Below are positions 1-35,120 of a DNA stretch of 64,000 nucleotides, one piece after another. The notes beneath the pieces are model-generated. The model was given only the letters and a program-made list of their open reading frames with translations. It had not been told where the DNA came from and did no database searches. Numbering within the stretch: the first letter of the stretch is position 1; every line of letters begins with the position of its first letter. The stretch covers positions 62,001 through 126,000 of the forward strand of contig CBFFRP010000199.1 in assembly GCA_965644295.1 (NCBI GenBank), given 5' to 3'. This DNA is from Paraphysomonas bandaiensis. Its lineage: Eukaryota > Protista > Chrysophyceae. The translations under genes and the position numbers were made by a program.

Positions 1-690
1 TACAGATCATCAAGAGAATGTTGATGACGCAACTGTTGGGGGCATTATTGCAGAGTCTGCTGGTGATGATGCTAAATCAGATAGTGGTAGTGCGTCTGGC
101 GTCGAATCGACAGATATAGATCACCATGAGAATGTTGATGGCCCAACTGTTGGGGGCATTATTGCAGAGTCAGCTAGTGATGATGGTGGCGATGGCGATG
201 ATGCTAAATCAGACAGTGATAATGTGTCCGGCGTCGTAACGACAGATACAGATCATCAAGAGAATGTTGATGGCCCAACTGTTGGGGGCACTATTGCAGA
301 GTCTGCTGGTGATGATGGTGGCGATGGCAATGATGTGAAATCAGACAGTGATAATGTGTCCGGCGTCGTAACGACAGATACAGATCATCAAGAGAATGTT
401 GATGACGCAACTGTTGGGGGCATTATTGCAGAGTCTGCTGGTGATAATGCTAAATCAGATAGTGGTAGTGCGTCTGGCGTCGAATCGACAGATATAGATC
501 ACCATGAGAATGTTGATGGCCCAACTGTTGGGGGCATTATTGCAGAGTCAGCTAGTGATGATGGTGGCGATGGCGATGGTGCTAAATTAGACAGCGCTAG
601 TGTGTCCGGCGTCGAATCGACAGATATAGATCATCAAGAGAATGTTGATGGCCCAACTGTTGGGGGCACTATTGCAGATACAGCTGATGC
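1..690 (+). repeat. Coding tandem repeat, 114/132-bp units (38/44 aa) with a 378-bp higher-order period
   Basis: GATCA(T/C)CA(A/T)GAGAATGTTGAT recurs at 5, 119, 251, 383, 497 and 629 (spacing 114, 132, 132, 114, 132). Confidence 0.95.
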
Positions 691-3600
691 GGATAGTGAA
701 GATGAGGATAGTTTGTATGGATGTGAAGCAATTGGCTGTACAATCAGAGATAGACGTGACCGAAAAGTAAATGGATGCGAACGACAATTACAGGGGTCGT
801 CGTTCAAAGGTGAGAATGATTCATACCTCCAGCGGGAGAGAAGTGATAGTGCGTATGGTATAGAATCTATGTGTGGGTTGTCATTATCGTCAGACCGAAA
901 TACGCTGAGTAGTCAGCAGGAATATACAGAGCAGCCCATGTATTATATATTTGATGGAAATAAGTGGAGAGGTGCTACAGAGGATTTAGTGGACACTGTA
1001 CCTCGGAGAGATATAAGTAATGCGCCAGGCATCGAAAGTAAAAGAGAAGAAATGGACAATGAGAGGTCGCCAGAAGTGAAAAGTTTGGAGAAAAGCTTTC
1101 GAGAAGTTTTGCAAGATGGAAAGAATGACCTAATTTCGGAGGATGAAGAGTGTGATGATGCGTCAGTAGCTTCGTCCCCAGTGGTAAAACACTGCAACAT
1201 TATAATTGAGCAGCTGGATGATCTTCGCAACTGGAAATATTCTGCAATTGAATCGCAACCTGGAAGGCCATTGGATACGTATGCGTGTACCGATGAATTA
1301 TATCGAGCGGCACGTGCTAAACAGACACATTCTTCACCACAGCGATTAGTGACGAATGTGTTGTCTTCTCAACACACAGTGAATTCAATAGGAATACCAG
1401 ATCGTAAAAGTTCGAAACCTTCACCTCCACTACGGCAAGCTACGTGGTCTACATCCCCTAGTAATATACCAGAAAAAATGAATATATATGATGCCCCCGT
1501 AATATCCGGTAGCATAGACCAGAAATATAAGCCACGCCATAGAGAGAGTGAGAAGAGTGTTTTCACAGCTCTACGGGATGAAAAATCCGGTGGTTCGTTA
1601 AAGGAGAATGAATATTCTACGCTTTCGCCTGAGTTCAAACCAGGAAGTACTACACATATTCAACCTAGGAGGTCTGGTCTTGACTCGAAACTGGGTACAG
1701 CTTTCATGGTTGATGGAAGAGATGATGCTGTCGACTCGCATATTATCAATAAATCATCTGAAAATGCATTAACTCCTGGAACTGGACACACAAATATACG
1801 ACCAAACGAGAAGCGAGATGTAACTTTCCCTACGACCGATTGCAATTCTCCAAGTCACCTGAGACAAATCCCATATCATGAGCAGCGTACCAGTGGTTCG
1901 GATTGTACTAGGGGTGAGAGGGCTTCCCGTCTTGATACACCATGTATGCTGGGTGGAGTAGATACAAGGGGCGGAAATAGTGAAAATAGTGATACGTATA
2001 ACGGCGCAACGAGCAGTGGTTGTTTTACATGCCAAACGACTCGTGCTGAATTGGATAGTGTGTGTTCTGGCTCCGAATTGGCGAATATGAATAGTAGTGG
2101 TGATAGTAGAAGTAGTAGTGGAAATCGACAGTGGAAAAGTAAACTTAGTGGTGAGGTTTTAAATGTTCATAATGAAATAGAGGCGGACGTTTTCACTCAC
2201 GGGATGAGATTACTAGAACATCGAAGTGAGAAAACCACAACGTATTGTGGAAGTAATTTGAAGCTTAAGAGTAAACCAGCAGCACCTTTGACCCCCCCTG
2301 GAACTCGAAGCAGTGATGTTGACACAGATTTCGGATTTTCTTATTCTATGTCACCTGGTAACAAAGGGTGTAGTGGAAATGAATTGACTGCAGGTCACAA
2401 AGATCATGTCAGTAATGCTTCTGAGAAAATCGAGGTTCGTGAGGAATACGTGGATGAAGATAAAATAGTAAACCATGAAACGTTGATATTGAGAAGTAAG
2501 CCTGCTCCCCGACTTACACCGCCGGGGTTGCATCGAGACAATAGTGGTGGAGATTCGAAATCGTTGAAAGACTCGAGCCCAACGAATGTCGATGTTGAGG
2601 GAAACGGTGATGGAGACAAATGTGAAAATATAGTCGAATTAAAATTTGGCGATAGCCCGACTGAAGGGTTTGATGAATTGACTGCAGGTCACAAAGATCA
2701 TGTCAGTAATGCTTCTGAGAAAATCGAGGTTCGTGAGGATTACGTGGATGAAGATATAATAATAAACCATGAAACGTTGATATTGAGAAGTAAGCCTGCT
2801 CCCCGACTTACACCGCCGGGGTTGCATCGAGACAATAGTGGTGGAGATTCGAAATCGTTGAAAGACTCGAGCCCAACGAATGTCGATGTTGAGGGAAAAG
2901 GTGATGGAGACAAATGTGAAAATAAAGCCGAATTAAAATTTGGCGATAGCCCGACTGAAGGATTTGATACCAGTGCCAAGTTTGATAGATTTGGGTCTAC
3001 CGGCGACAATGTATTTGATGACGAACCATCAGTTCCCCTGCAGCAGTTTGAACGAAACAAAAGAAGATCGCCTGATTTGGATTTATCATCTCCGCAACTT
3101 GATATCGGTAGATCGTCTTATTGTAAGAGTGGAACTATATTGCGGTCGCCAGAGGAAAATGTATCGGGCTGTGTTGTAGATTCTGCTCCTGTATCACCAG
3201 ACAATCGTGTACTGTTCACACGTAGCAATCCAGCGGCCCCGATATCTTACCCCAGTGGTGCCCTTGAAGTCACTAATACGTCATGTTCTGAAGATATCCC
3301 AGTGTGTTCAAATGAATTATCCCGACATTGCAAACCGTCTTCTGCGTCACCTGAGAGAGACGTCGTTCCCATAAAATCTCGTCGATCGAACCTTATGCTC
3401 TCATATACGTCGACCCAGCCTGCAACAGAGAGCAGCAATGTCAATAGCCAAATTGGGGTACGTCCGAAAGTAGATAAAGTGGACCCTAGAAGCGTACACA
3501 AAGATAAAATTGTAGTTGACGGTGTCCGAACTTCTAGAAAGTTATTATCCCTGACCTCAACCGCTGGTGACCCTGCAGTACCCCGAGTTTTAGATGACAC

Positions 3601-6600
3601 AGGTGATCATGTATATGAACCTGGAATGAAAAGAAGCCACAGCGAGTCAACAACGCCTTACCACACGGGTTTCGAGGAAAGACAAGGTCAACAAGCTCTT
3701 TTGGGACGGACTTCTGCTGAGAATGTCGCAGAAGATGTTGACGACGATTTTGACTTGGTTAACCTAGGTAGATTAATTGGCTTGTTTAAAGAAAGTAACT
3801 TGCAGAGAAAATCCGACAATGGTTCAAAGAAACCAAGTAACACAAACCATGTCAGTGACAAAGTGGAGATGGATGTTGACGAGTCGCAGCAGCAGGTATC
3901 AAGTCAAGAGTTATTTGATGACTCAATGTCACGACTGCAAATGGCTCAAAGTGTTACTATCGACGAGCGTGATATGTTTGACGAAAATATGGAAACTCCG
4001 GTTCATTTGACGCCGAGCAGGGTGCCGGGTTATCACATGCAAGACTCCAGACCAGCATTTTGGATAGGCACTCAGTCTCCCAAAAGAAATGCTGAGGGAC
4101 AATCAAAAGCTGATGATGTGTCTAAGGATGACATTGTGAGGCGCAGAATTCGAAAGGATGCTATTTCGGTATTCCGACAGTGTGATAATGATCGTGATGG
4201 TGCCTTGAGCTATTCTGAGTTCTGCATGTTTTTACATAAGTGTGGGTTTTTCTCGTCCTCTGATGTTGAAAAGTTATCATCTGAAAGCTTAGAGAAAATG
4301 AAACGTCCTGCACGTGGTTCTACCATGAAGCACCCACCCAAGACACCTTCGTATCGAGTTGCCGACTTACTGCGCAAGTCGTACTGCCTCGCCGATAGAC
4401 TGCGAGTACCTCCCAACCCAGCAGCTTCTGTGAGTTCGCCTTCGAAACGAAATTTGGTGGGTTCAATGTGTAATTGATACGTCGTGTGCATTAGTTTATT
4501 TGGTACTGTGTCCCATTTGCAGGTGCGCAATACATTTTCACTGAAAGATTTACGCCGAGTAGACATGGTTGATACTGTTTCTTTGGAAGCTGCTGTAAGA
4601 TTGCTGGAGTGTGTACAAGGATTTGAATCTTTCACGGACAAGGTTCTCAAGAATCTTATTGAAGAGCTGAAGGTGCGACGACGAATGAATTCGGTAAGTT
4701 TTATTTTGTCATTGCCCAGTTTGTATATTTGAAGCTTGTTCCCAGAAAGGAGAGCGGAAAGAGGTCACTCCACAATATACTCCATCGAAATCTGGAAAGC
4801 AGACTTCAACACATTCGAAGTTCCCTGGTCGAGGGGCCGCTTATGGTTTAGACTTACATGAGGTAATTATGTATATTGTGTTTTGTATCGGAAGTGATAT
4901 ATATCCAGACCCGGTCTGTTTACAAAGAGAGAAGATGGAAAAAATTGTTACATGAAGTAAATGAAAAAGTTGAACGTGAACTGTCATTTAGCCCTCGAAT
5001 TGGTCCACCACCACCTCCTCCGCATATTGGGCCTTCATGTGGAAGTTCCGTCACGTCTGGTGTAACTTCAGGCACAGGGTATTCATCTAGATATCGCCCA
5101 GCATATGAAAGGACTTTGAGTCCTCATCGTAGTCGTAAACGACGGAGTAAAGTATTCAATACAATTCCTTCGGACTATGCCTATGTGGAGAGAGAAAAAA
5201 TTCGACCCAGTGATCCTCGAACATCAGAAGAAATTGAAATAGAGGAACATTGTACGTTCAAGCCTAAGGCTGGACCAGAATGTCCGTTTGTAAGCACCCG
5301 AACGATTAACAAAGTCGCCGCACCGATCTCAAAGAAACCGCCGCCACCACCTCCGCCACCCTGTCCCCCGTCGGGAGAGGAACGATTCACTGGATCTGGT
5401 GGCATCAAATTAGAAGATGCTTTGCAAATGGAATTGGAGTCATTAGAATTGCGCCCAGGGGCCCCAATATATTACTATAACCCCTCCGCTTGTCCCCCAC
5501 CAATTCCACCTGTAATTATTCCCGATGCTCCTCCGTTACCCTCCTGGGCATGGATGCCGCCTAAAAAACAAGAAATAAAGATAAAGAAATCTGAACCGAA
5601 GAAAAGCGTTGCTAAATCGGATTCTGGTACTGGGTGGGGGTCATTATTGGCCGAGTTAAATGCGAAAATTAAAGGTACAGAAGGTGGCTTGCAGCTAAAA
5701 AAAGTCGAAACTAAAGTAGGAAAGTTGTCCATGAAGAAAAAAAAGAAGTCGAGGAAGCATGGGTTTACTGATGTTATTGATGAGCTGTCGTTTACGTTAG
5801 CAAAGCTGAAGCGTCGAGGGGAAGAGGGGTCAGATGAATCGGAGGAAGAGTCAGATGAAGAATCAGAAGGTGAGGAGCAGAAGTCACCAACTCCAGGGGT
5901 GATGTCTCCGGCAGACAAGTTGCGAGCCGGAATCACTGGTTTGCCTGCTCCAGTATCTCAGCCAGATGCTAGCGACGAGATGCCTGTAGAAGAAAAACCC
6001 GACCCCTCGACGCTTAAACCTGCCACATCACGGAATTCTCTGGCAGTGCCTAAAGCGCCATGTCTACCTGGAATGTCAGAGTGGGCAGAGCCTATAAAAG
6101 TGGACATTCTAAACGAAGAAGATTACGCAAAATTTCCGGAACCTCCGGGATATATAGATGCCGAACAGGGAAACCGCACTCGCCCAACTGGGTACTATAT
6201 TCCAGCACCTTCTTCCGACATGGTGAAGGGTGGTGATGTTATCCTGGCAGGTTACATTGGAGAGAAGGAAGAGCTGGACGAACAAGTACGTAAGCGTATG
6301 TTTAAAGTGATGCCAGTTAGTGGTGCAAAACCTTTACCACCGAGCGTGGCTAGACGCTTGAAAAAAGCAGATTCTCTAACTATGCCAAGAGCTTCTTTCG
6401 CCATGAGAGAGGGTATTGATTTAACAGGGATAAATGAAGTAGATGAAGAGTCATTTGATGGTTCTAGCATTGTATCTGTTGCCTTGAGAGATAAAATAAC
6501 ACCCGGAGATCTACCAGTCCCTGCATCGTATCACGAAAAAGTTGAATTTATTAAGAGTAATGTGCAAAAACGTCAACGGGACGATACAGTCAAGTGGAAA

Positions 6601-9600
6601 ACTGGAATGCGCAACTACGACAGCGACGAGGAGAAAAAGAAAGTGAGGGAACCTCCTCCTGATAAACCTACCCAGCCGACGGAATTTAGTTTTCCAACGT
6701 CACGGCGGAAAAAAGACAAAGTAATAACTTTTCGAAGACCTCCTGAGAGTACGTCACCACCACATAAGTTGCCGTTCGCTGGCTTTATTCGAGAGTCTGC
6801 GACTCTTAACAATCCTCAGGTATCGAGTTCTGTAGACTTAGGAACCAAATACTGGGCTTCGAATCTCCGAAAGGATTCTTCACGTCCCGCACCTTTCTTC
6901 GAGCCATATTGTGGAACAAAGGAAAAGGAAGAGGAGAAAAGAAAACTTGAAGAAGAGAGGGAGATTGCTCATGTGCATGAGTTGCTTGACAGATATGAGC
7001 AAGGGGAAGATGCTGTCATATCGAAAGGAGGCTGCCTCCGAAGTTATCCTGTAGTTCCACGTGGGAAAATTGAAGCTCCTAAACTGAAATACGGGGAACG
7101 TGCTGAGAAAAAGCGAATAAAAGAAGAACGACAACAGCAGGAAGCTATATTAAAACGACAGCGGGAAGAGTTTGAAGAAAAGAAAAGAAAACAGGTGTTG
7201 CGGAAGCGGGCTTTGCGTGTTGCTGAGGCTGTGAGAAAGGAGAGCTTTTCCAGCGGGGTAGGATTCAGTAGGAGTATCAACCATACATCAAGTTCCGGTA
7301 CTATGAATGACTCTTTTGTTCGGAGTATAGACAAAACTACCCAAAAGTATGCCGACAACTTGAAATTCAGTGGAGTCGACACAAATATATTGCAGGAAGC
7401 AAAGGGAAATTTTGTGAATTGGAAACAGATGCAGGAGGATCAGCATATTGAGGGCTCATCGGGGAAGAATTCATGTAGGGATAGTTTTGATGACATTGAC
7501 AGCATCAATAATCATTCTATTTATGAGCGTCCAGCAAATGATATTTTGGACAGTTATATGAGCAATTCAGACAATGACTCTGTTGGGCTTAGCAGCACAA
7601 AAGGTTTGGTTGTTGAGGTAGATTTGGCATCTGAGTGTGGCGGGAGGATGGAAGAAGACGAATTATGTGTGGAAGAGTATACAGAAACTCCTATGTGCTT
7701 TGAATTTAGAAAGCGGAATCGTAACCGTCGTAGTGGGTATATAACAGAGGATATTCCTGTGTATACTTCTCCTTCCCGTGCTAGCAATACTCCTACACCA
7801 CTGATGGTATTTGAAAATCGAAAAAAGAAGGCCGAAATCGAAATGAGGAGAAACGCTTTCGAGGAACCAGATGATGACTGCAGACTAGCCTTAGCAGTCA
7901 AGAGTGTTCCTCGAAGGGGTCGGCTCAGTGTTTTACCAGTTTGGAAGGGGTCCACATCCAGCTCTGGATTTGATGAGAGTGCTGCCAACAGAGTGAAGAT
8001 CCGTCGAATTGCAGGGGAAGAAGGAAGAGAGGGTGCCATTCTTCACAGGAAAAAGCTTCTATCCGCGCACCAAAGTAATAGTTCAGATGAATATACAGAA
8101 AGTGAAAACGAAGATCAGGAAAGCGAAGTTGCCATGGAGAATTTGAAGGACGAAAAGGTTGTGTCTGCCTTACCTCAAACTGTGCGTCCACAACAGAGCA
8201 TCGGTCAGCTTTTTGGGGAGATTGCTGATGATCAAAGTCTGCAGCGATTTTCAGAAAATGATGATGAATGGCAACCTGTCAGTGATTCCCACGTGAAAGT
8301 AAATCAAGCCTCTGTCGAACGTGAACAAATTGCAAGTGGAGATCATATTGATAGCAATGTCCCGGAGCGTCGGAGGACTTTGTCAATAATAGATTTGCAA
8401 AGTTCTGTCGATCACCAGGTATCTGGTGCTAACCGGAGGCGAAATAGTGTAGGGAATATGCCTTCTGCACTCCCAGAAAATGGTATCCGTAACGGTTCAA
8501 GGCTTTCTGCTGTGTTCTTATCTCAAAAAAGTGGTGATGACGACGCTCCTGATGGTGCGTATCCTGGTTCTTATGTTTCTACCGAACACGCACCCGACAA
8601 CTGTAGTGATAACGAAGGCAATAAATGTGATGAATTAGATGTTGAGCAAAAATATGTCGTTCCCACCAACAAAAAAACAATGAAGTGGACTCTTGGTAAT
8701 ATCGATGACCCTTCAATGAATCCAGCACAAATGATGATGAATATATCCGCCGCTCGAAAGACCTTGAAGAGCACTCCATCGAATCTTGGCAGTCAATCAA
8801 GTGGTAGGTTTGAATCGGAGGATAACCCTTCACCGGCTATGCGTAATAGAATTTTGTCAGAATCCGCCACCATGCCTGTCCCAGCAAGCACTGATGATTC
8901 AGATATGCAGCCAGTGCAACGAGTACCACCTCGACGCAGGAGTAGTATGTCTGCAGCAGAACTTAAAGATGCTGGAATTTCGTCTTCCGCCATTCAAACG
9001 TGGTTAGGAGTTGGCCGACCTTTGCATCGTAGTGTTACTGATAACGCATCTCCAGAAAACCTTAAGTCGACCAGTAATATTCCTGTCAGACATCACAGCT
9101 TACACGCAGCTGAAAAAGGCTCGAATCAACAAAGTTGTCTACCCAAACGGCGGAGCAGCTTATCTGTCATTCGTTCAAATAGTTCTCTCGTAAAACCATT
9201 TGATACTCAACATCAAAATTATCAACATGAGAGCACCAATAAGACACCATTTGCGGGTGATAGTTGTCGTACCGAGGAAAATAATGATCCAATGAATGGT
9301 GGATACACATGTGACTATACTTCTCATATAACTCATGTACAACGTGAAAGTAATTTAACCGTTGAATATGACGGTGATAGTCATGATTCAACGATTCAAC
9401 CATGTGAAGCTGGAGCTGACGTAAATGCAAAGTTTGAGGGAAGCGCGAAAGAACTTAATGAGAATGAAGGGGTCGTAAAAATTCCCTTCTCCATGAATTC
9501 AAGTGATGGTGGCCATATAGCTAGACGGAGCAGTGCGAATATTGTATCACATGCGCATGTTGAACAGAATGTGAGTTGTCCAAGTAGGCGTCGCAGCTTG

Positions 9601-10398
9601 TCATCGATAAGTATGGAAGATGTCGCCCCCCCAATGAAGGTTGTAGCAGAGTGGAAAGACAGCCCAAGTCAGCAGCGTCGAAGTCAAAATGATGTCGAAC
9701 TAGACAACGACGAGGCCGATACATATAGCACCGACCTCCTTCCGCCCAAAACACAACAACTTTTTTGTCATGACCCACAGCCTTCAAGTGCTGGGGCTGA
9801 CCAGTCCACTGCTGTTGGTGTCTGGGATGATCATACCCAACCGTCACCTGAATTGAGTGTGCGGTATGATAATGAAAACTATGGAACTCATGAAAGTTCT
9901 TTAGCTGTGCAGGATCTGCAACCTCAACTGCAAGAAGTGTATCAAGATAATTCCGTCCCTGAGTCGCCTTATCAGCGTGATTTATCAACTCAATCTGAGT
10001 ATACATCTTCCAAGCAGACGCCGCCTTTTCGTAGGAAGAGCTCAAGTCTAACGGTATCTCAGATGTATCCAGCTTCAGATCAACCAAACTACCCCAGACG
10101 GCGGCAAAGTATGTCGTCTATCTCATCGCAACCTTCAAATGCTTCAGATATGCAGACCAAAGAAGCTTATGGAGAAACGCCGATCGGAGATATGGACATG
10201 GCGAGTATTTCAGAGTCTAACTGGACCCGACCATTGAATATTGGCTCTGCCCGCCACAGTACTCTGAGTGATTTGCATAATATGAAAATGGCACTAGTGG
10301 AAAGGGAGAAACTGATGGGCCGCAGCAGGAGACAGACGGATGCAGTTTTGTCTGCCGCTGATAAATTGACAGCGTCGGAAATGTTGATGCTGTTGTAA
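1..10398 (+). CDS. Giant (>3400 aa, 5'-truncated) low-complexity protein with N-terminal acidic repeats, EF-hand, poly-Pro tracts, WH2/VCA-like module and coiled coil; exons <1-4456, 4523-4693, 4746-4862, 4909-10398
   Basis: Frame is open from base 2. Three GT..AG introns (4457-4522, 4694-4745, 4863-4908) join ORFs 224..4477, 4484..4732 and 4876..10398 in phase 0. EF-hand loop FRQCDNDRDGALSYSEF; motif SLLAELNAKIKGTEGGLQLKKV. Confidence 0.8.
2379..2968 (+). repeat. Near-identical in-frame tandem duplication of 294 bp (98 aa)
   Basis: GAATTGACTGCAGGTCACAAAGATC starts at 2381 and 2675; peptide ELTAGHKDHVSNASEKIEVRE...FGDSPTEGFD occurs twice. Confidence 0.95.
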
Positions 10399-10844
10399 AA
10401 TCTTTTCACAATGTAGTAATTTCTAGAATATAGTTTGAGTTTATTCTGTGTGTGACCAATATATTGTATTTTGCTAGCATCGTAATAATAGTTCATTTTA
10501 ATATGATGTGCTGTCAAACGGTAATTCGATTTTTTATGTACTTTGGTGGTACGTTGTTCTGTAGACTTTGAAATGAAGTGTAGATATTGCAATTTAAGGC
10601 TGGAAATGATGTGAGGACAAAGTTCGACAGTGATATATTTTTAGAGTTGTTTATTGCACAATTCTTTTAAACAACTCCATACACGTTAAGTACCATGTTC
10701 CATTGGGACGTTTTGATGAAAATCTCCATACTATGAAACTTAGTTTCTCATTCCAGCACTGATAATAAAGGATATATTTCCATTAAGTCCTACCTACAAC
10801 AGTTATGCTATTATGAACTCAGCATCATTAATTGCATGCTGAAT

Positions 10845-11140
10845 ACACAGGCTTCCGGGAATGGGCCCACCTCAACGGCATCCGGGGTATTGGGCTACCT
10901 GCTGAAGTCAAGCATCCGGGCCGTTTACCTTAAGGACTCAATAATCCTAAAGTCAGCATATATAAGGTATATCAATATTCTGCTCGCTCACTGAGTGATA
11001 GAGCGAATGCAGTTGCTCCTTAATGATTGCGGTGATGCACAAGCAGCTTTCGTAGCGGTAAATAGTAGGATAACAGAGTTAAGCACTAGTTAGTTAAATT
11101 GCAGTGCAAAATTAGTTCTGACTCTTAAACGCCAATCGCT
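10845..11140 (+). repeat. Dispersed ~280-bp repeat family, copy 1
   Basis: Aligns by eye to 37452-37725 (same strand) and to the reverse complement of 45533-45705. Shared blocks with copy 2: GGGTATTGGGCT, GAAGTCAAGCA, CCTTAAGGACTCAA, AGTTAAGCACTAGTTAGTTAAATTGCA. Confidence 0.85.
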
Positions 11141-11339
11141 AGTATCAAGACATTCACAACATAGTACACACTAACGGCGCCTGATTTTTTAATTATAGTC
11201 ACTTTTATACTTCAATCAATTAACCTGTGATGTTAGAGCTTAAACTCACAATATAATTTGGTCAATGTACAACACTTTTCATAGCATTAGAAGTCTAAAA
11301 TACTCTACTGACACTTTTCGGATTTGGCCAGCGAAGTCT

Positions 11340-13854
11340 TTATTTACAATCCTGTGATACCTCAATAAATTTTCGACTACAACTTTCAACAGCACGAACA
11401 ACATCAGCGCTAACATCATGAACTAACTGTTTTCTCAGATCAGTCAGTTTATCAGCCAACTTTAATACTTCGTGATTGCTAAGACGTAACGTATTCACTA
11501 AGTTCGCCATCTCTTCTCCCATGAACCCCCGGCTAAGCGCATCCAATGGACATACAGCAGGTGTTTCGCACGAAGATAACGCAGAGGTAGAGTTTATTGC
11601 AGGAAGAAAGCATCTAGAATGCTCACATGTTTGTAAAGCATGTGCAATTGCGCTAATAGGTGCTGCTATAGCTTGTATTTGGCTCACAGTTTGCTTAAAA
11701 TGCCCGTTCAGACTATTTGTCATGCCTTTGAGAATTGGTAAGCATGTAGAAGATAAAGTTTTCCATTTATCTAGATTTGCCTCGACTGTTTGATTACAGC
11801 GTAAGAGAGTATACAACTCAGAGCGACACCTGTCAGCTGCTCGTTGCATGCTGTTAGTCCACAACTTTCGGGTATCCAGCGCTTTAAAAGTCTGTGAACA
11901 GAACAGTTATACACATAAGTCCTCAATACTACTGAGCGAGTCATATATAATACATTCAATTACGCAGGCTTAGTTTCGTACCAATTCAATAAAAGTATCT
12001 AATCCAGTGGAACTTGAGCTCAAGGGCAAACTTCCATCAGTTGGAGTTGACAGCGGAGATAGAGGAGCCATACATGATGTCAATAGCAGCAAAGATCTGG
12101 ACTTCTTCCTCAAATCAGAAATTTTAATGTCAGTTGATACTTCTGTAATCACTGAGTCTAACCCAACAAAAGAAGAGTGTGATATATCACCGCCAACTTT
12201 GGTCAATTCAGCATTACTGTTGTCCGGCATCCCTGCCGACATCGAGTGAGAAACTTCAAAAGCACATTTGCTGAATTCGACGAGCTCTCTTTGTACCGCA
12301 TGAAGTCTTTTTATATCCAAAGCAATGCCCTCACTATCACCGCAACTCTCCATATCACGTTCAAATGTTGCCGTATGCATGCTCGCAGGCGGAAAGACAC
12401 CAAGAATTCGATGCAATTGTGCCTTCGACGAACCAGACGGAGCGTGACCTACGTTGTTGTCATCTGGAGAAGCAAACACGCTACGCGTAGAGCTAAACGA
12501 TCCACCTGCCAATGATGGCTTTTCTCGAGCAGTAGAAGTGTCGAATGCGCCGGAAGAAAGCGGGTTTCTTCTGACCTGGGAATTTGAGTGACAAGCAACA
12601 GTGGGGTGTACTGAAATAAAACCGGTAACGATCTGCCGAGCAGAACGTCTAGCTGACGTCCACTGGTGATGTAGTTCCTGTATTCGCGATTGCATGACTT
12701 GCCAGCCAGAAAATTCTTTGGTATAATCTGTTTGTGAGAAATCTTGTCGTATTAATGGCGGATTCCGTCGACCGCTGCTCCGCGATTGCGTTGATGTTCC
12801 CCGCACACTCCCCCCGCTTCGACTTCGGCGGACTTGAATTCGACTGTTGTGATTTTGCTGTACTTTCTCTCTTTCTATATCCTGGGATACTTCTTCGTTG
12901 GAATCTTCGACCTTGATTTTTCCAATACTGGCGACTTCCTCGACAGCTGATTTGAAATCTGTCATAAGTAAATCCATCTTAGCCTCCGTCTCATCACGAG
13001 CACAGATAGCCTCCTAAATACAATACACACATCACTACCTGTGTATTCATACTGGAGCATATATTGGTTACGAGAATCAATACCTGCAACGTTTTAAGGC
13101 TCTTGGAGAGCTGTTCATTGTGATGCTGCAACACAGCAAAAGATCGTTGTAGAACCTCATAGTCTCCTATCGTATTATCTTCCCCCTTGATAGGTCTATC
13201 AGGTGAAGTTACTTTCTGCTTTGGTCTAGGTGATGTGGGATTGGCTGCTTTACAAGCCAGTTTCTTAGCTGGTGTGCGGACACCTCGGGGTGTGGACTTC
13301 GGCGTTTTCGGGCCAGTCTGGGGACCCAGAAGGCCATCGTATCTAGAGGTTGTGTTATCCAGTAAGCTACTTGCATTCAAATCCAGTTTTGGTTTAGCCG
13401 CAGGAGATTTAATAGAATTTCGATTTTGATCACCACATATATCGATAATACCCACCTGCAACAAATGGGCCACAGCTTGCAGTTTAAATTGTAAATCATC
13501 ATGCATAGACTGTAGAGGATTAGAGAATGCTTCAGTTGCTGGTGGGAATCTTAAATCAATACAAGCTTGAAGAATAATCTCATAAAATTGATGACGATAT
13601 AATTCTTCAGCATGTTTACGATCATCACGTGTAGCATTTTGATTTCTTAATATATTATTTGTATGTATACGTTTATCATTTAAATCAGATAGTTTCTCTG
13701 CATGTAAACGTAAAGATAAAGAATGTTGTATTATAGATGTGAATATGATTCTTTGTGTTTTCCAATTAAATTCTTTTAAATCACTAACAGTTAGATTGTT
13801 GAAATCATCACTGAGATAGTATTGTAATTGTGATCTTAAACTAACTAAATCCAT
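11340..13854 (-). CDS. Hypothetical ~784-aa protein with coiled-coil segments; exons 13854-13084, 13013-11982, 11891-11340
   Basis: ORFs 12994..13854, 11970..12977 and 11340..11864 are joined in phase by GT..AG introns 13083-13014 and 11981-11892. Confidence 0.75.
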
Positions 13855-27541: not shown

Positions 27542-28179
27542 CTTTGAACGAGCTGGTCGCCATGCTACTACAGCGTGTGTTCAATAACATTAGATATTAG
27601 AACATGAACAGCTCTACAATATATAGACTTTTATAAGGTGGATGTGAAGGGTTGGTACTACAATTACATTTTCTGTCGAAAAGTGAGTTCAATATATGAC
27701 CGGTTTGTTTATTGTATATTCTGCAGATTGATAAAAGCATTGTAAAACAATCAGGCAGTGTCTTTATATCATATGCTTTTCTAAAGAATTAACGTATTAG
27801 TATTGAAACAATTAACGACTCAGAATCGTTAACAATACGCGCGATCTGATATGGTTGTACACGCACTCTTTTCTTCACGGCCAATGTGTATTTCGCACTT
27901 TCATGCACGCTCTCTTGCAATAACTATAAAAACACCTAAACCGTTTTGCTCATATGTGTGTTCATTATGCTATTGTCTTTGCAATTGTGCTACAGTGTGG
28001 TTACAAGACAGTCGTAGAGGTATACACATTTCAAATTTAATGCTGGAGAATTGTAGAATAGCATCAAAATGAACTACAGTTTTCTTTGAAACTGCCACAT
28101 ATAGTATTCTTCTTTGATTAAGTCTTACACATCAAGGTTAGAATGGATATCCTAAATTGTTTCCATCGGTGGGTCGAAT

Positions 28180-28470
28180 TTAGTACCTATAGGTCGCTCG
28201 ACCTACCTATAGGTCCATCGCAGGTACCTAATAGGTACCTACCTAATAGGTACCCACCTATAGGCATGCCTAAGGACCCTACCTATAGGTAGGTACCTAG
28301 CTGTCACTACCTATAGGTATACCTAGCTACCCTGCCTATAGGTGATAAGAGTTAGGCACCTACCTATAGGTACCTCAAGTCCCACCTATAGGTATCGAAG
28401 GATTAGGTACTATCTATAGGTAGTGCTACTCGTTGCCTATAGGTATAAGACGAAAGACCTGTAGGTACCT
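28180..28470. repeat. Left subterminal array of palindromic TACCTATAGGTA motifs
   Basis: About ten complete or variant CCTATAGG cores in ~290 bp. Confidence 0.95.
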
Positions 28471-28634
28471 GAGTTTTGAACCATCAGATGTTGTTTTAAG
28501 TTTCACAATGTACATAGGCAAGCAACACAGCGGTGAATAGTATAATATATCTTTTTTTGTTATATATTATTATTACTAAACAAGTATGGCTGTGCATTCT
28601 ATGATCATAATCAATAATAAGCGCGCAACATTAA

Positions 28635-31600
28635 TTATGTGTCATTGTCAGAAGAGTCACCGGTGCTGTAAACAGTACTGGGATTGCTATCACATTCTGA
28701 TGAGTGGTCACTACTGCAACTCTCATTGTTTGCGTTATGACTGTCGTGGCCATGCACATTACGTTCAAGAACAATTGCACCGGAGCTATTTTGTCTGATA
28801 TATTGTTGCATTCCCTCTATATGATGACAGTTAATAAAATCCAAATCATCCCACCCACAACGATCAAAAAACTTCCTCGGAATAAACCAAAAACGATCTG
28901 AAATTTGAGGCTTACCCACGACGACATCGCAAGAAGAATCTGGTATTATAAAAGCTGTGTCAATAATACTTTCAAAATTAATAATATCCTGAAAAAACTG
29001 AGGTTGTCGTCGCCTGTTGTAGCGCAGTACCTCCCACTTATATTTTGAAAACGGGTCAAGAATAGTGGTCGTACATTTTTCCATGTATTGAACAATATAG
29101 AGATATTTAGTGTTGTTGGCCGCTGACAACTGAAGCATCGATACTATTTGAGCAACTTGTATGTCTCCACTTTCCATTTGGATGCATATGAAATCAAAGC
29201 GTGGTTTTCGACTCTCTGCCCCTTTCATGGCATGATGAGATCCTTTACCAATGCCACTCTCTTTGTTGGCATTGTAGGTGAGGGCCTGTATTAACTTCAA
29301 CGAGATGTCACCACGTTGTAAACAGTTCCAGTTCTTATCACCAAGAGCTTGTTTACAAAAATCAGTAAGGGAGTTACTAGATAATTCCTTGTGTCCAATA
29401 AATTCTTCCAATTCTATTCCTTCTTCTTCACAAATAAACAAGGAGTGGTTAGCATCAACACATAACCGCACATGTTTGACATTTCTCATGGGGTAAACTA
29501 GAACGACCTCCGGTGGAATTTCTGGCTTCAGAGAGTTTATGTATTCAGTGTCGTGTGTGTGGCACGCGGCTATAAACTCAAGTACTCGACAATGATCTTG
29601 GCATATTGCTAATGTTAGCATCTCCACATTAGAAGAAGTATACCTCCTGCTTGTGCGTCGCCAGTTTTCGGTTGTAAAATAGCGATTGCTTGATTCCCAA
29701 GTACCCGCATCAGACTTTGATAATGCCCCAAACATGGAAATATTAAGTGAAAGATGCATTACAGAATGGAGTTTGCGCATTAATGGACTTGATGGCTGGT
29801 TACCAAGAAGTGTTTGTTTCAAATCCCATACCAGTAAAACCTTAGCAACCATATCGTGGCACATACGGTCCACATTCAGGATGTCACCATCAGTAAAACA
29901 GCTTTTCTTGCACTCAAAATAGACGTTCAGCACGGCTTTAATTGCTTGTAACACTTTCTTTGTTACATTGCCTAAACGCAGGTGCCGTGAATTTTTGCTG
30001 CAATAACTGTAGTTGGTATCTGTCGGTAGCACTTGACCATCCGTGCCAATCTAATGTAAAAAGGTGATGTCAAGCACATAATATAGAGAATACAATTTAG
30101 AAAAACATACCGCAAACAGAAGTTGCAATAGTGCCGTGATGAATTCACTTGATCTATATCCACCTCCGGAACCAGTCGAGTGGCCCTTTTCCTTTTTACT
30201 TTTATTGCTCATAATGTGCATCAAGCCTTTCTTGAAGACTGTCCAATTCACGTGTGGCATATCAGGAACCTGAGGCATCAACTTAAGTCTGGCATCCAAC
30301 ACGCCCTTAATATTTCGAAATGTTCGGTCTACTGTTGTGCTAATACTGTCAACAACGCTAAGAATCCATAAAACAAGACTTTTTGCAATACCAGCACAAA
30401 ACAGGTGAAATAAGTCTTGAGGATTATTGAAGCAATGGTTGTTGTAGCCCATAAACGCATGATGGAAGGCGTTTACAAACGGCATGATGCATCTATTATC
30501 AAGTAACTTACGAACATACTTCTCTTCTTTGTCTGATAGCTGACCACTATTCACATTTCGGCACTGTTCAGCAATGGCATTGCCATCTCTCCTCGGATGA
30601 AGGTCTGGGTTATAAAAAACACCGGCCCTCAGAGGATACTCACATGTAACACATGCAAAGCGGGAATTTCCTTCGTATAAGCCAAACTGTCGATGGATGG
30701 CCGGGTCATCTCCAATGCTAAAAGGATGAAAGGTATAAACGGTAATTAAACCCTTTCCTAACACATACATCTCTGCACCTCTAGAAGAAGCAGCTTTGAG
30801 AGGAGCCGTAACCATACTCCAGAATTCTTTTTCCAAGTGCAAGTTAAACCACCTGACTTCCTTCCCTGCTGCGGTTCGGCTCATTCCACGTTCCATCAAA
30901 TGAGAAATCAGAGCTTCGACACTTATCGTGCTTGTGATGTCAGGAATAAAACCTAAGCAAAACTTTGCAATATTTTTCCGAATTAACTCATCGCTGAAAT
31001 TGCCGCATGTCCCCAGGACTGGCACAGACTTGATGTTGGCACCATGCCCCATAGCAACCCCGTCATGATACAGTAGACATGGCATTAATTTGCCTTCAGG
31101 ATTTTTTTCTTGGCGTATAACTCGCTCCGTGTTCTTCGCCCAGGATGATGACATGAGATCACCAACATAGTTCTCACCAGTATTAATATCTGTCATGGAA
31201 AATGTATCATAATGAACGTGCTCTTTCCACGAGAACTGAATTGTCGGGTCGACGGCCAGATAACTTAGCATTTCCAATGGGTCTCGTGCTCGAACAATGA
31301 TTTCGTCAGGTTTCTGTCCAGAAATTTTCCAAGATTCCATTTCCCACGAAGATGGCCAACCTATAGACTTTTCAACATATCTGTAATGTTGTGTTCTCTT
31401 TTTGAAATTCGACACAACTGTCTTCCATGATTTTGGAAGTTCTTCACAAGGTTTGAATAAGCGAATCAATTCCAGAAGTGCATCTCCTGTAGATCGGCTT
31501 AACTTGCACTTTCTTCCAAATGCATACAACTTGAGAAGCAAAATATCTGACATGTTATGATTACTCGAAGTGCTGACAGCTTCAATAAAGCTTTCAAGAT

Positions 31601-32012
31601 TCATAGCTCCCAATGCATCCACGCCATAAGACTTGTCGTAAAACACTTCCTGGAGCTTCTTATACGTGGAGAGTGGTTTGTCTTCCGCGTCATAATCTGG
31701 ATGACAGATTGGAAACTCTGTATTTCCAGTTGGGCTTGCTTCCTCCAGTCTCTGATGTTGCCACATGTACATAGGAATTGATGAGTCCTCACAGTCACTG
31801 TACTCATCAATTCCACTGTCATCTTGATTGTAATCATCATGAATAGTGTAAGCCTGAGGTCCATATGCAGCTTTTCGTTTCTTAGAATACTGCTCTGATG
31901 TACAAATCTCTGATTCTGAAGACAGTGGCGAGCAGTATCTTCCATGGTTCCCCAGACTCTGACTTGAACTGAATATTCCCTGACATATTGCGCATTTCCA
32001 CAAGCTGTCCAT
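28635..32012 (-). CDS. Plavaka-type transposase (~1105 aa) with N-terminal C2H2-like finger; exons 32012-30111 and 30050-28635
   Basis: CAICQGIFSSSQSLGNHGRYC; RDPLEML; GDLMSSSW; LMPCLLYHDG...PVLGTCGNFSDELIRK..FCLGFIP; IGDDP; CVTC; QDLFHLFCAG; RKLHSVMHL..ISMFG...TWESSN; a 60-bp phase-0 GTATGT..TTAG intron joins the two long ORFs. Confidence 0.82.
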
Positions 32013-32325
32013 AATATACTGCTACGATCGTATCTACTGCTATCTGTTATACGGTACAGCAGTATACTACAGTGTTGTACTCTGCTCCGTACTGTGCGTA
32101 CAGTAGGAAATTCCTAGTATATAAAAACGAGTGCACGATTATAGCACACACTTCCTGGACTTCTCTCGAAGTTGACTTCGAAGAAGTGCATCACATAACT
32201 ACATATATGAAAGAAAGAAGCAAAGAGGCGAAGTGTGAGTATGTGAATATATTCAGAGAGTATGCGAATATTTGAATTTCAAACATGTGAATTCATGGTG
32301 ACTTAATGCCACAATTTACTCTGAG

Positions 32326-33878
32326 ATGCCCCTGCGAAAACGAACTGCATCTGCTGTGTCTGCGAGGGCACAGAAAAGGCCTTGTCAACAGCAATCCATC
32401 GTGGACGACAACTTCGCCGCCGAACAGTCAGATGCTTCACCTCGAGAAGCCAGGATGCCTCCATGTAACTCTTCGTCCAACTCGACAGTGTACACGACTT
32501 TCAGGCATAAGAAAGTCCAGTCCAGGATTTTGGCGACGGTTCTCACAACGAATGAGCTGTGCATTGGACGCCAGAGCGCCGAAAAACTCTCCACTCTTCC
32601 AGGATTCCGTGCTTATCACAAAGAGATGATGTATGAACGTCTCTTTGTTAAACTGGACACAGGAGATGTGGTTTCAGTGGAAGAGCACTTCGACCTATTG
32701 ATTCAGCTGATTTTGGTGGTGATTTCAAAGGAGGGGGTTGCAACTCAAGCTCCTCATAACAAGGTTATTCATGTTGTTTTCTCTGCCACATATCTTGAAT
32801 CATATAGCATCACATATCATCATATATTGTATACCCTCACATCATCAAATACCATCCTCCTTTTATCATGTATTAACATATCGTACACCGTTATATTATA
32901 CATTTCATATCTATCATTGTATTAGATACCTCTTGTGTTTTTTGAACAACCATATCAAATATTATGATATCGTATGATATACATCGTATAACATATATTT
33001 TATACCATTCATTATTGTATCATTACGTTATATATATATCATATCATACAGTACAGCATAATATATATATCGTGCCGCATCGCATTTTACAGTGCCCAGT
33101 CATCTGCTACTATTATATTATTATTGTGAATAACACACTAGTAGGCATTATCTCTCGCTTATAAAGAAGGTGCTTTGCAAGCTGATGAAAAATTGTTAGC
33201 AAGTGAGGTGGTGTCTGCATTTTCGGCGTGCAAGTATATACTGCTCATATTATTTACTTTTTTCTAATATCATTGCAGGTATGTCAAGAAGTATATTCGC
33301 AAATTGTCGTGTAATTTGAAGACCAAGATTAGATGTTGTCACGCCAAGCTGTTCTCCACACAGCCTTTGTGGGCGACTGCATCATTTAGACGGGAATTAG
33401 CCGAAGTATTGGAAAATGGTAAGTATTTATTATATTGTGCCAATTGATGTAATTCTGTTGAAAAGGTATTAGTCCACGAAAGTATCAAGTGGACAACAAG
33501 GGGTCATATATGCAGACTGCCATTGAGGCAGTATGCATCATGATTGGAGCTTACGACTTCGACGAAAACGAAGGTCCTGGGGCCTTTATGGGCCAGACTA
33601 GCATCATGGTTGAGTCAACGGCTCAACAGATGCTTTTAGGTCCTCCACGAGAAGCATGGACATCTGAAATTTGCTCCAGAGCGACCGACGGTATGAATCC
33701 TATTCGGGATTCCCGGCGTGAGCTTGTGATAAGTGACAGTGATTTGAATTTTTTCAAGAATGAAAGGTTAGTATGGTTCAAACGTTGGGGTATGGTTCAA
33801 ACGTTGGGGAAGTCGAAGAAGGACGACGACAGTCTGAACAATGACGATACTTCCCTGTTAACTTCAGATTGGCGGTGA
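32326..33878 (+). CDS. Transposon accessory gene, 359 aa, unknown function; exons 32326-32763, 33145-33233, 33279-33418, 33466-33878
   Basis: Three GT..AG introns give an uninterrupted frame (...PHNK|ALSLAYKEG...SACK|YVKKYIRK...VLEN|GISPRKYQVDNKGSY...). Lies inside the TIRs, divergent from the transposase. Confidence 0.7.
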
Positions 33879-34137
33879 AGGCTTCTGAAGTGCACAATGC
33901 TTCTACTTCTTAGCAGGTGATTGGGAGCTAGCTTACGATGTGGTTCAAATTTGTCGTGGTATGTATTTTGTAGGTTCTAAGTAGTAATTGCCGTTAATTT
34001 TTACTTCGAACTATGTTAATGCCGTCTATATTAATTGAATACATAGTTTGTCTACTCATTCATGATTACAGATCTGCATTGCTTGCTTTTTCTACTTTGC
34101 AATATATATATTATACTGTGTTTATTATTGCTAATTA

Positions 34138-34485
34138 TAGTACCTATAGGTAGTATTGGTATTATATTTTTAGGTAGTACCTATAGGTAGTATTGATACA
34201 TGTAGGCAGTACCTATAGGTACATTTTAATATAAATAGGGATACCTATCAGTAGGAAATCTAGAGGTCATAGGTACCACCTATAGGGAGACGAATAGGTA
34301 CGTGTATTAGGGGGTACCTATAGGTATACTGGGTAGCTATAGGTGGTACCTATTCGAAAACCTTTAGGTACCACCTATTGCTCAAAAATGTACCTATAGG
34401 TAGACAGAGGTACCTAATAGGTACCTTCGATTTTAATTATAAAAGTACCTATAGGTATACCTATAGGTAGGTACCTATAGGTACT
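34138..34485. repeat. Right subterminal array of palindromic TACCTATAGGTA motifs
   Basis: Many exact TACCTATAGGTA copies, including three back-to-back at ~34446-34483. Confidence 0.95.
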
Positions 34486-35120
34486 CAGCGGGAGTCCCAC
34501 CGATGTCTTTGTCACATGATTCTAGTGAGGTGAAAACACATCCTGTATCTACCGCTTCCCCATTGCAGTGTCATTCAGGATCAAGCAGCAAAAATCAGAC
34601 ACCAGTCACTTACGAATGCCTCAATAAAGGAGCATACAGCACACATATACATTGTTCACATAGCTATCCGACATAGTGGTTTATGTCTATTGAGCTCATG
34701 GATGTGTAAAATTCTATTGCCTGCCATCGAAATGACAGTTTATCTTCATTGCGATTTCATTTTATGCCCGACAATACCATGAAATAAATGACTACACTCC
34801 GTTGCACATGTGTTTACATCGAAGGCCATGTGGTCTTCATACACAAGCCAAATTCCAACATAGCTAACCTTATTGCTCCTATATACACTGTTTACAATTA
34901 ACTCGTATTGATTGGAATACGATACACTTACATTCGGTGGAATATCAAGCCCATAGAGCATATATAGCTACTTCATCTATATTATATCCTGCTGCATATC
35001 CAGAGTGAGATGCACGACTGTGTTGGTGGGACTGATGTATACCGCATATACGTATACAGCATACAGCAGTTTATGTCAGAGGTATATGTACTGTACTCCT
35101 CCTATATACAGGGAGTGGTT

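Follow-up and report, generated by a model that had tools for sequence, protein, structure and literature searches.

A stretch of 64,000 bp from the genome of Paraphysomonas bandaiensis (contig CBFFRP010000199.1, positions 62,001 to 126,000; hereafter the window) contains a 6.3-kb element with two divergent genes, one encoding a transposase and the other a protein that we call ORF2, for second open reading frame (ORF). We conclude, with a probability of about 85%, that this element is a cut-and-paste transposon of the Plavaka lineage, both autonomous and recently active, in a non-fungal marine protist. The lineage falls within the CACTA/EnSpm-Mirage-Chapaev-Transib group and is distantly related to plant CACTA elements and to RAG1, the recombinase of antibody genes. 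The Plavaka family was reportedly first named by Iyer et al. in 2014. An initial annotation, made from the window alone, had described the element as young and possibly active. This description is borne out by near-identical copies with target-site duplications (TSDs) of their own, by copies in which both genes are open, and by an insertion polymorphism between the reference assembly and a wild population.

Copies, termini and recent mobility

The window copy ends in perfect 10-bp terminal inverted repeats (TIRs), CATCGGTGGG on the left and its reverse complement CCCACCGATG on the right, with TC outside each, just as the initial annotation had read them (Table 1). Seven full-length copies, measuring 6291-6351 bp, were recovered from the assembly (62.6 Mb in 669 contigs); they lie on C199 (the window), C152, C400, C319, C259, C405 and C394, the last of which ends 4 bp early at the start of its contig. 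The seven copies are 99.70-99.98% identical and differ mainly by small non-coding insertions or deletions (indels), and their flanks differ and begin exactly at the termini. When shorter relatives are included, at least 11 copies have this pair of termini, and their flanks differ. Additionally, a pattern composed of the terminus and the first subterminal motif, CATCGGTGG-N(10-12)-GTACCTATAGG, has 49 matches in the genome, compared to 0 for a reversed control. Because the same termini delimit many copies with different flanks, and because the pattern is so much more frequent than its control, the inverted repeat is beyond chance.

A perfect 2-bp TSD surrounds eight of the 11 paired copies (TC, TA, TC, AC, TA, GT, CA and TT), and no strict target sequence is apparent. 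Genome-wide, then, the termini and the 2-bp duplication first read from a single copy hold up, with three deviating pairs. In one old pair the TSD is one base off (TT/CT). The other two have one extra base at one end and are readable as 3-bp duplications, namely the C405 copy (AT plus C, CAT/CAT) and a 230-bp mini-element on C149 (TAG/TAA). At C405:179244 the reference has the extra C between the element end and AT, and three metagenome assemblies do not have it; because this independent junction reads plain AT, the C in the reference is either a later change or an assembly error. In the C149 mini-element the extra base is a G beside one terminus, corresponding to the same C when read from the opposite strand. 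The extra base at these two sites could stem from cutting that is now and then imprecise, from duplications of 3 bp or from errors of assembly.

A wild population carries an insertion that is missing from the reference. The exact 653-residue ORF of transposase exon 1 occurs on three marine metagenome assemblies, one of them named for Tara Oceans (PRJEB4352), and the 197 bp to the left of the element on these metagenome contigs are 100% identical to C230:29164-29360. In our assembly C230:29360 is an uninterrupted site without the element, and the insertion is therefore polymorphic. The initial annotation had proposed to look for empty sites, and here is one that is occupied in the Tara Oceans assemblies and empty in ours. 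Because the empty-site match ends exactly at the C of CATCGG, it also fixes the boundary of the element. The right flank on the same metagenome contigs is that of the C405 copy; these contigs were probably joined across two insertions, each of whose junctions must still exist in the reads. We found no second haplotype of the window flank, that is, no empty allele, in the assembly, and a scan of JGI metagenome contigs for the terminus pattern gave 0 matches.

Both genes are open in the window copy and in those on C152 and C405. In the C400 and C259 copies a 1-bp gap interrupts a G run in ORF2 exon 1 (position 32733) and may be an assembly error; ORF2 exon 4 is frameshifted in C319, and another 1-bp gap lies in transposase exon 1 of C394. 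Deletion derivatives ranging from 54 bp to 4.3 kb keep the same termini. They include non-autonomous relatives on C88 (3082 bp), C395 (4331 bp) and C169, in which 28736-32216 is missing and ORF2 is a pseudogene interrupted by stops, as well as mini-elements of 54, 135, 230 and 918 bp, each delimited by a facing pair of termini. An older subfamily, B, has a transposase coding sequence about 76% identical to that of the young copies (subfamily A) and retains the CATCGGTGG terminus with a 2-bp TT duplication; its non-coding DNA is otherwise unalignable. Termini of the form 5'-CATCG..CGATG-3' are found in all subfamilies of this genome. Overall, the element is intact, young and probably active.

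The transposase

The transposase has 1105 residues and is encoded by two exons of 634 and 471 codons with a 60-nt GT..AG intron of phase 0 between them. Exon 1 contains the motifs LYHDG, GDDP, CVTC and DLFH and exon 2 contains KLHSVMH and TWE; the spliced reading frame of the initial annotation is thereby confirmed, with all of its motifs located. Because the intron separates the second catalytic aspartate from the catalytic glutamate, the complete transposase would be made only once the intron is spliced out. Comparison confirms the splice junction, because residue 634 of exon 1 and residue 1 of exon 2 align to adjacent residues in at least 15 contiguous relatives. At the position of the intron, subfamily B shows a gap of 47 nt.

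We searched and modelled the transposase and ORF2 exon by exon. Exon 1 matched the Pfam Plavaka profile (PF18759) at 46 bits, against a cut-off of 26.3 (E 5.9e-12), and residues 204-550 cover positions 2-325 of the 325 in the profile, which agrees with the Plavaka-type transposase initially proposed from motifs. At E up to 0.1, there was no match to another transposase family in Pfam, and in particular none to the plant CACTA transposase models (Transposase_21/24 and others). With E limited to 0.001, an exhaustive HMMER search returned 313 representative clusters, of which the best is 42% identical. When we looked up the sources of the top 20 clusters, all 20 came from metagenomes or Logan/EukProt only and none from NCBI/UniRef; three carry the IMG label "Plavaka transposase". 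Plavaka was also the sole transposase family matched by 15 of 17 aligned relatives, with a best E of 5e-20.

The D-D-E, C(2)C and H(3)H motifs are all kept. D317 (in LYHDG), D435 (in GDDP) and C454-x2-C457 are invariant across the 17-sequence alignment, and D533-x2-H536 of exon 1 and H95-x3-H99 and E119 of exon 2 are conserved among the relatives. Selection has acted on the gene, with a dN/dS (ratio of nonsynonymous to synonymous substitution rates) of 0.13 between subfamilies A and B. From these residues we infer that the protein is catalytic. At the N terminus, exon 1 has a zinc-finger motif, C-x2-C-x12-H-x4-C (C2HC). A PDB profile search of the transposase gave no sequence-level match to RAG1 or another chain, and only a weak C2H2 zinc-finger hint at residues 3-28 that fits this motif.

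An AlphaFold2 model of exon 1, built from the 17 sequences, had a mean predicted local distance difference test score (pLDDT) of 75.6 and a predicted template modelling score (pTM) of 0.70. All 43 of its Foldseek matches at E 0.001 or better were RAG1 (best 5e-6), with amphioxus BbRAGL next at E 6.8e-3. VIA aligned residues 152-634 of the model with RAG1 458-865 at Z up to 10.1 (351 residues, root-mean-square deviation 7.4); the 31 RAG1/RAGL entries had Z of 6.8-10.1, BbRAGL being at 6.8, and the entries that followed had Z of 3.4 or less. As modelled, exon 1 matches a RAG1/Transib-like catalytic core fold. The second aspartate lies 19 residues from the first zinc cysteine, and the second zinc histidine 20 residues from the glutamate. 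We take the catalytic residues of mouse RAG1 to be D600, D708 and E962 and its zinc ligands to be C727, C730, H937 and H942, in which case the D708-C727 and H942-E962 spacings equal the 19 and 20 found here.

One relative, P0005 (1261 residues, 35% identical), belongs to a cluster found on dozens of contigs of up to 15.8 kb. On L059, a 12.1-kb metagenome contig from ENA, it adjoins a 1601-residue protein that contains a Peptidase_C48 (Ulp1-type) domain, together with three small divergent ORFs (features at 798-2471, 2642-6427 and 7157-11962). Ulp1-type proteases are familiar passengers of plant CACTA and Mutator elements. An inverted-repeat search of L059 found no termini.

Subterminal palindromes and the second gene

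The palindromic octamer CCTATAGG occurs 19 times in the window, where 0.52 would be expected, and 18 of the 19 exact copies lie within 28186-28443 and 34143-34481. With its flanking bases it forms a 12-bp palindrome, TACCTATAGGTA, which is present in about ten copies at each end, spaced mostly 20-30 bp apart, and is absent from the 5.6-kb interior. The arrays of subfamily B are larger, with 17 and 23 exact copies in a 22/23/28-bp rhythm. Their retention there, while other non-coding DNA fails to align, points to a function of the motif, for which protein binding is the simplest explanation.

As in the initial annotation, a second, divergent gene lies within the TIRs on the + strand (32326-33878). 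Comparison with subfamily B, which has the same exon order and the same phases, resolved it into four exons encoding 359 residues, with GT..AG introns of 381, 45 and 47 nt (32764-33144, 33234-33278 and 33419-33465). The spacer separating the two start codons, which may act as a shared bidirectional promoter, is the most indel-prone part of the element among the copies (7-, 8- and 40-bp indels). Between subfamilies A and B the proportion of nonsynonymous differences (pN) in ORF2 is 0.375 and that of synonymous differences (pS) is 0.774, which is saturated, and the amino-acid identity is 37-53%, compared to 72-75% for the transposase. Because pN is this low against a saturated pS, the comparison indicates that ORF2 is under constraint, yet evolving much faster than the transposase.

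Within ORF2 exon 4, eight clustered transitions at 33551-33629 set the window and C152 copies apart from the other five young copies. Several of them are 6 nt apart, and three codons change from G to D/E; outside this segment the young copies differ by few bases. The cluster looks like a short gene-conversion tract from another subfamily.

A mechanism consistent with this anatomy can be outlined. The transposase, with its N-terminal zinc finger, RAG1-like DDE core and C2/H2 zinc module, would recognize the CATCGGTGG termini, excise the element and reinsert it by a 2-bp staggered cut. The palindromes at each end are most likely the binding sites through which both ends would be assembled, and they may be bound either by the N-terminal part of the transposase or by the ORF2 product, the latter by analogy with TNPA of maize En/Spm. 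Taken to its full extent, the analogy would make ORF2 an obligatory dimeric partner that binds TACCTATAGGTA and pairs both ends, a functional counterpart of TNPA evolved or retained in a Plavaka element. We regard this proposal as doubtful. No sequence similarity of ORF2 to TNPA was found, as judged by the lack of a Pfam match.

Alternatively, ORF2 may be a passenger, captured or arisen de novo, that has no role in transposition, with the transposase zinc finger reading the palindromes; this is a tentative but serious possibility that we place short of even odds. Several observations speak against an essential role for ORF2. The protein is an orphan: Pfam searches with the four exons gave only noise at E up to 10, a word search with exon 4 found zero relatives, and tblastn with the exons at the loci of the closest metagenomic transposases found no match. 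An AlphaFold2 model of exon 4 was helical, with a pLDDT of 47.6 that is too poor for a fold search. ORF2 diverges at a far higher rate than the transposase does. Three of the seven young copies appear to have a frameshifted ORF2 (two of them through the shared G-run gap that may be an assembly error), and the gene has decayed in non-autonomous copies that still carry duplications. Because of these frameshifts and pseudogenes, ORF2 may not be needed in cis. However, its four exons and their phases are kept across subfamilies that have diverged to saturation, with pN about half of pS; within this genome it is found only inside element copies; and a trans-acting factor may well be broken in some of them.

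In a protein-language-model search the neighbours of ORF2 exon 4 (33468-33875) were two families of basidiomycetes, DUF6532 and DUF6698, with a score of 0.95 but low recognition. We did not accept this identity, which Pfam and HMM (hidden Markov model) searches do not support, and we treat it as a lead only, a hint that the partner gene may have fungal counterparts. In some Ganoderma genomes, DUF6532 is reported to be enriched alongside the Plavaka and KDZ domains (PMC8955403).

Placement within the transposase group

The initial annotation took Plavaka elements to be described mainly from basidiomycete fungi. This premise is out of date, as they have already been reported from red algae (10.1101/2025.02.11.637652), from green algae and streptophytes (PMC13519894; 10.1101/2025.02.07.637104) and from Amoebidium (10.1101/2024.01.08.574619). 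In the literature we found no stramenopile for which Plavaka is named; EnSpm-class elements are listed for several. PlavakaA elements have TGT..ACA termini and 2-bp duplications, and PlavakaB elements, from Agaricomycotina, have 5'-CATCA..TGATG-3' termini and 2- or 3-bp duplications (Kojima 2025, PMC12730594). The CATCG..CGATG termini described here agree with those of PlavakaB at four of five bases, and the 2-bp TSD is within the PlavakaB range. Both features also lie within the CMCT (CACTA-Mirage-Chapaev-Transib) group, which is characterized by 5'-CA..TG-3' termini and 2-5-bp duplications (PMC12730594). The suggestion that the element may define a new family thus survives in part. It is a new family-level member in a new host group, and not a new superfamily or a new kind of element; the combination of CATCG with a 2-bp TSD is hardly a new signature, given the published PlavakaB.

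Two other assignments do not fit the ends. EnSpm/CACTA proper would be expected to have CACTA (or CAC..GTG) and a 3-bp TSD, where we found CATCG and 2 bp. For Transib, a 5-bp duplication and CACAGTG termini resembling a recombination signal sequence (RSS) would be expected, and neither is present.

It is improbable that the element belongs to another lineage of the broad group, such as Mirage, Lanisha, ESTA or EnSpm proper, and matches Plavaka through the shared core only. Mirage elements likewise make 2-bp duplications, the Pfam score of 46 bits is moderate, and the profile set that we searched has no competing Mirage, ESTA or Lanisha models. Rust-fungus elements with Plavaka-like proteins, moreover, are EnSpm by their termini and duplication length (Kojima, PMC12730594). 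On the other hand, the whole Plavaka profile was matched, with relatives reaching 5e-20; the termini share four of five bases with PlavakaB and are not CAC..GTG or CACTA (PMC12730594); and the duplication is 2 bp, rather than 3 bp or a fixed TA.

The host genome

The genes flanking the element are ordinary eukaryotic ones, encoding topoisomerase II, a DEAD-box helicase, a Myb protein, CMS1 and an ABC transporter. On C410, dihydrofolate reductase (DHFR) and thymidylate synthase (TS) are fused in one open frame, a fusion that is not known from fungi or animals or from lineages related to them. Silicon transporters are encoded by at least seven loci, each containing two internal repeats, on C348, C406, C398, C150, C405, C298 and C149, and three of these contigs (C405, C149 and C150) also carry copies of the element. 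A whole-genome search for a light-harvesting-complex gene found none, which is a weak negative; together with the silicon transporters, this fits a silica-scaled, colourless flagellate. The fused DHFR-TS gene and the silicon-transporter genes on element-bearing contigs substantiate the initial view that the host is not a fungus.

It is very improbable in this setting that the element came from a fungus by recent horizontal transfer, or that the contig is fungal contamination. Plavaka is most abundant in basidiomycetes, and the basidiomycete neighbours of ORF2 exon 4 in the language-model search are weak evidence in the same direction. However, the contigs shared with silicon-transporter genes and the fused DHFR-TS gene oppose a fungal source, as do the GC content of the element (0.40-0.42, equal to its surroundings), its short introns, the divergence of two subfamilies to saturation within this genome, and nearest relatives that are metagenome-only in 20 of 20 sampled cases and at best 42% identical. 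Least credible of all is a dead element whose copies arose by segmental duplication or as assembly artefacts: some single-base indels, such as that in the G run at 32733, may be long-read errors and one copy is cut by a contig end, but unrelated flanks start exactly at the termini with their own 2-bp duplications, the sequence to the left of the window copy occurs only once in the assembly, and the independent metagenome insertion occupies a site that is empty here.

Elsewhere in the window, 224-10398 (+) holds two very long open frames of 1417 and 1840 residues, in which Pfam found only a sub-threshold EF-hand.

Table 1. Features of the window copy (window coordinates) and mini-elements on other contigs
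Feature	Position	Strand	Remarks
Whole element	28164-34505		6342 bp; two divergent genes inside TIRs
Left TSD, TC	28162-28163		Read directly from the window
Left TIR, CATCGGTGGG	28164-28173	+	Also at other copies; metagenome junction stops exactly here
Left subterminal array of CCTATAGG (extended form TACCTATAGGTA)	28186-28465		9 exact and 2 one-mismatch copies, spacing 20-51 bp
Transposase exon 2	28635-30050	-	471 codons and stop; H95-x3-H99, catalytic E119 (exon numbering)
Transposase intron	30051-30110	-	60 nt, GT..AG, phase 0; between second catalytic D and E
Transposase exon 1	30111-32012	-	634 codons; zinc finger, Plavaka domain, D317, D435, C454-x2-C457, D533..H536
Spacer between the two divergent start codons	32013-32325		313 bp; putative promoter
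ORF2 exon 1	32326-32763	+	146 residues
ORF2 exon 2	33145-33233	+	89 nt; matching exon, same phases, in subfamily B
ORF2 exon 3	33279-33418	+	140 nt
ORF2 exon 4	33466-33878	+	136 residues and stop
Right subterminal array of CCTATAGG / TACCTATAGGTA	34143-34481		9 exact and 2 one-mismatch copies
Right TIR, CCCACCGATG	34496-34505	-	Exact reverse complement of left TIR
Right TSD, TC	34506-34507		Read directly from the window
Mini-element, 54 bp	C92:20678-20731		Facing terminus pair; barely more than two fused ends
Mini-element, 135 bp	C210:68294-68428		Facing terminus pair
Mini-element, 230 bp	C149:125745-125974		Facing terminus pair
Mini-element, 918 bp	C125:201417-202334		Facing terminus pair

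Discussion

Three further points tell against an active Plavaka transposon and have to be set beside the evidence for it. No excision footprint was seen. We found neither a transcript nor a spliced product; the word search with exon 1 returned only the element's own unspliced 653-residue ORF. Finally, the placement within Plavaka comes from an HMM match and terminal features rather than from a tree with named references. We nevertheless favor a recently mobile Plavaka-lineage element, and comparison with known systems indicates what it shares with them and where it departs.

The closest published counterpart is PlavakaB of Agaricomycotina, with which the element shares the Pfam Plavaka match, the CATC start, the 2-bp TSD and an extra gene, of which PlavakaB elements often have one. 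Unlike PlavakaB, the element has G rather than A as its fifth terminal base, lives in a non-fungal protist and carries as its extra gene an orphan instead of a TET/JBP dioxygenase, and the closest proteins to its transposase are environmental sequences only. Dense arrays of a 12-bp palindrome at both ends are a further difference, as we met no mention of such arrays in the fungal families. The elements of red algae (Bostrychia, Chondrus), green algae and streptophytes (Spirogyra, Auxenochlorella) and Amoebidium are similar in having non-fungal hosts, an EnSpm-like Plavaka transposase and accessory genes. In Bostrychia, inverted-repeat arrays have likewise been proposed to bind an accessory protein, and Auxenochlorella also has polymorphic insertions. 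The red-algal and Amoebidium elements, however, are giants of 17-50 kb with ParB-like, methylase/SET or recombinase genes, whereas the present element is a compact 6.3 kb with a single unrecognizable partner gene.

Maize En/Spm, which encodes TNPD and TNPA, resembles the element in its DDE transposase of the same broad group, its second element-encoded protein, a 12-bp motif repeated many times in each subterminal region, and its deletion derivatives, which are mobilized in trans. It differs in its CACTA termini and 3-bp duplication, and its two proteins come from one alternatively spliced transcript rather than from two divergent genes. Among RAG1, Transib and ProtoRAG (BbRAGL), the RAG1 core and BbRAGL are matched by the predicted fold of exon 1, and mouse RAG1 has equal spacings from the second aspartate to the cysteine and from the histidine to the glutamate. 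In contrast to those systems, the element makes a 2-bp rather than a 5-bp TSD and has neither RSS-like heptamer/nonamer ends nor a RAG2-like partner.

These findings overturn nothing, as non-fungal Plavaka elements and CATC termini with 2-3-bp TSDs have already been published. Their value lies in the fact that few complete, young copies of the Plavaka lineage have been described. A compact, apparently active element gives its exact termini, TSD, subterminal arrays, partner gene and splice-dependent catalytic triad, and it extends the host range of Plavaka to a heterotrophic, stramenopile-type marine protist. Its nearest relatives form a sizeable clade (the 313 clusters) that is known from environmental sequences only, as far as the 20 sampled clusters show. 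With a predicted RAG1-like fold and the same spacing of zinc and catalytic residues, the transposase may be a convenient relative for comparing mechanism across this group. If ORF2 were an end-pairing partner, the division of labor between a cutter and an end-organizer would be old or recurrent in the RAG1-related transposon group, and this element, being compact and intact, would offer a tractable model of that division as well as a candidate tool for stramenopile genetics.

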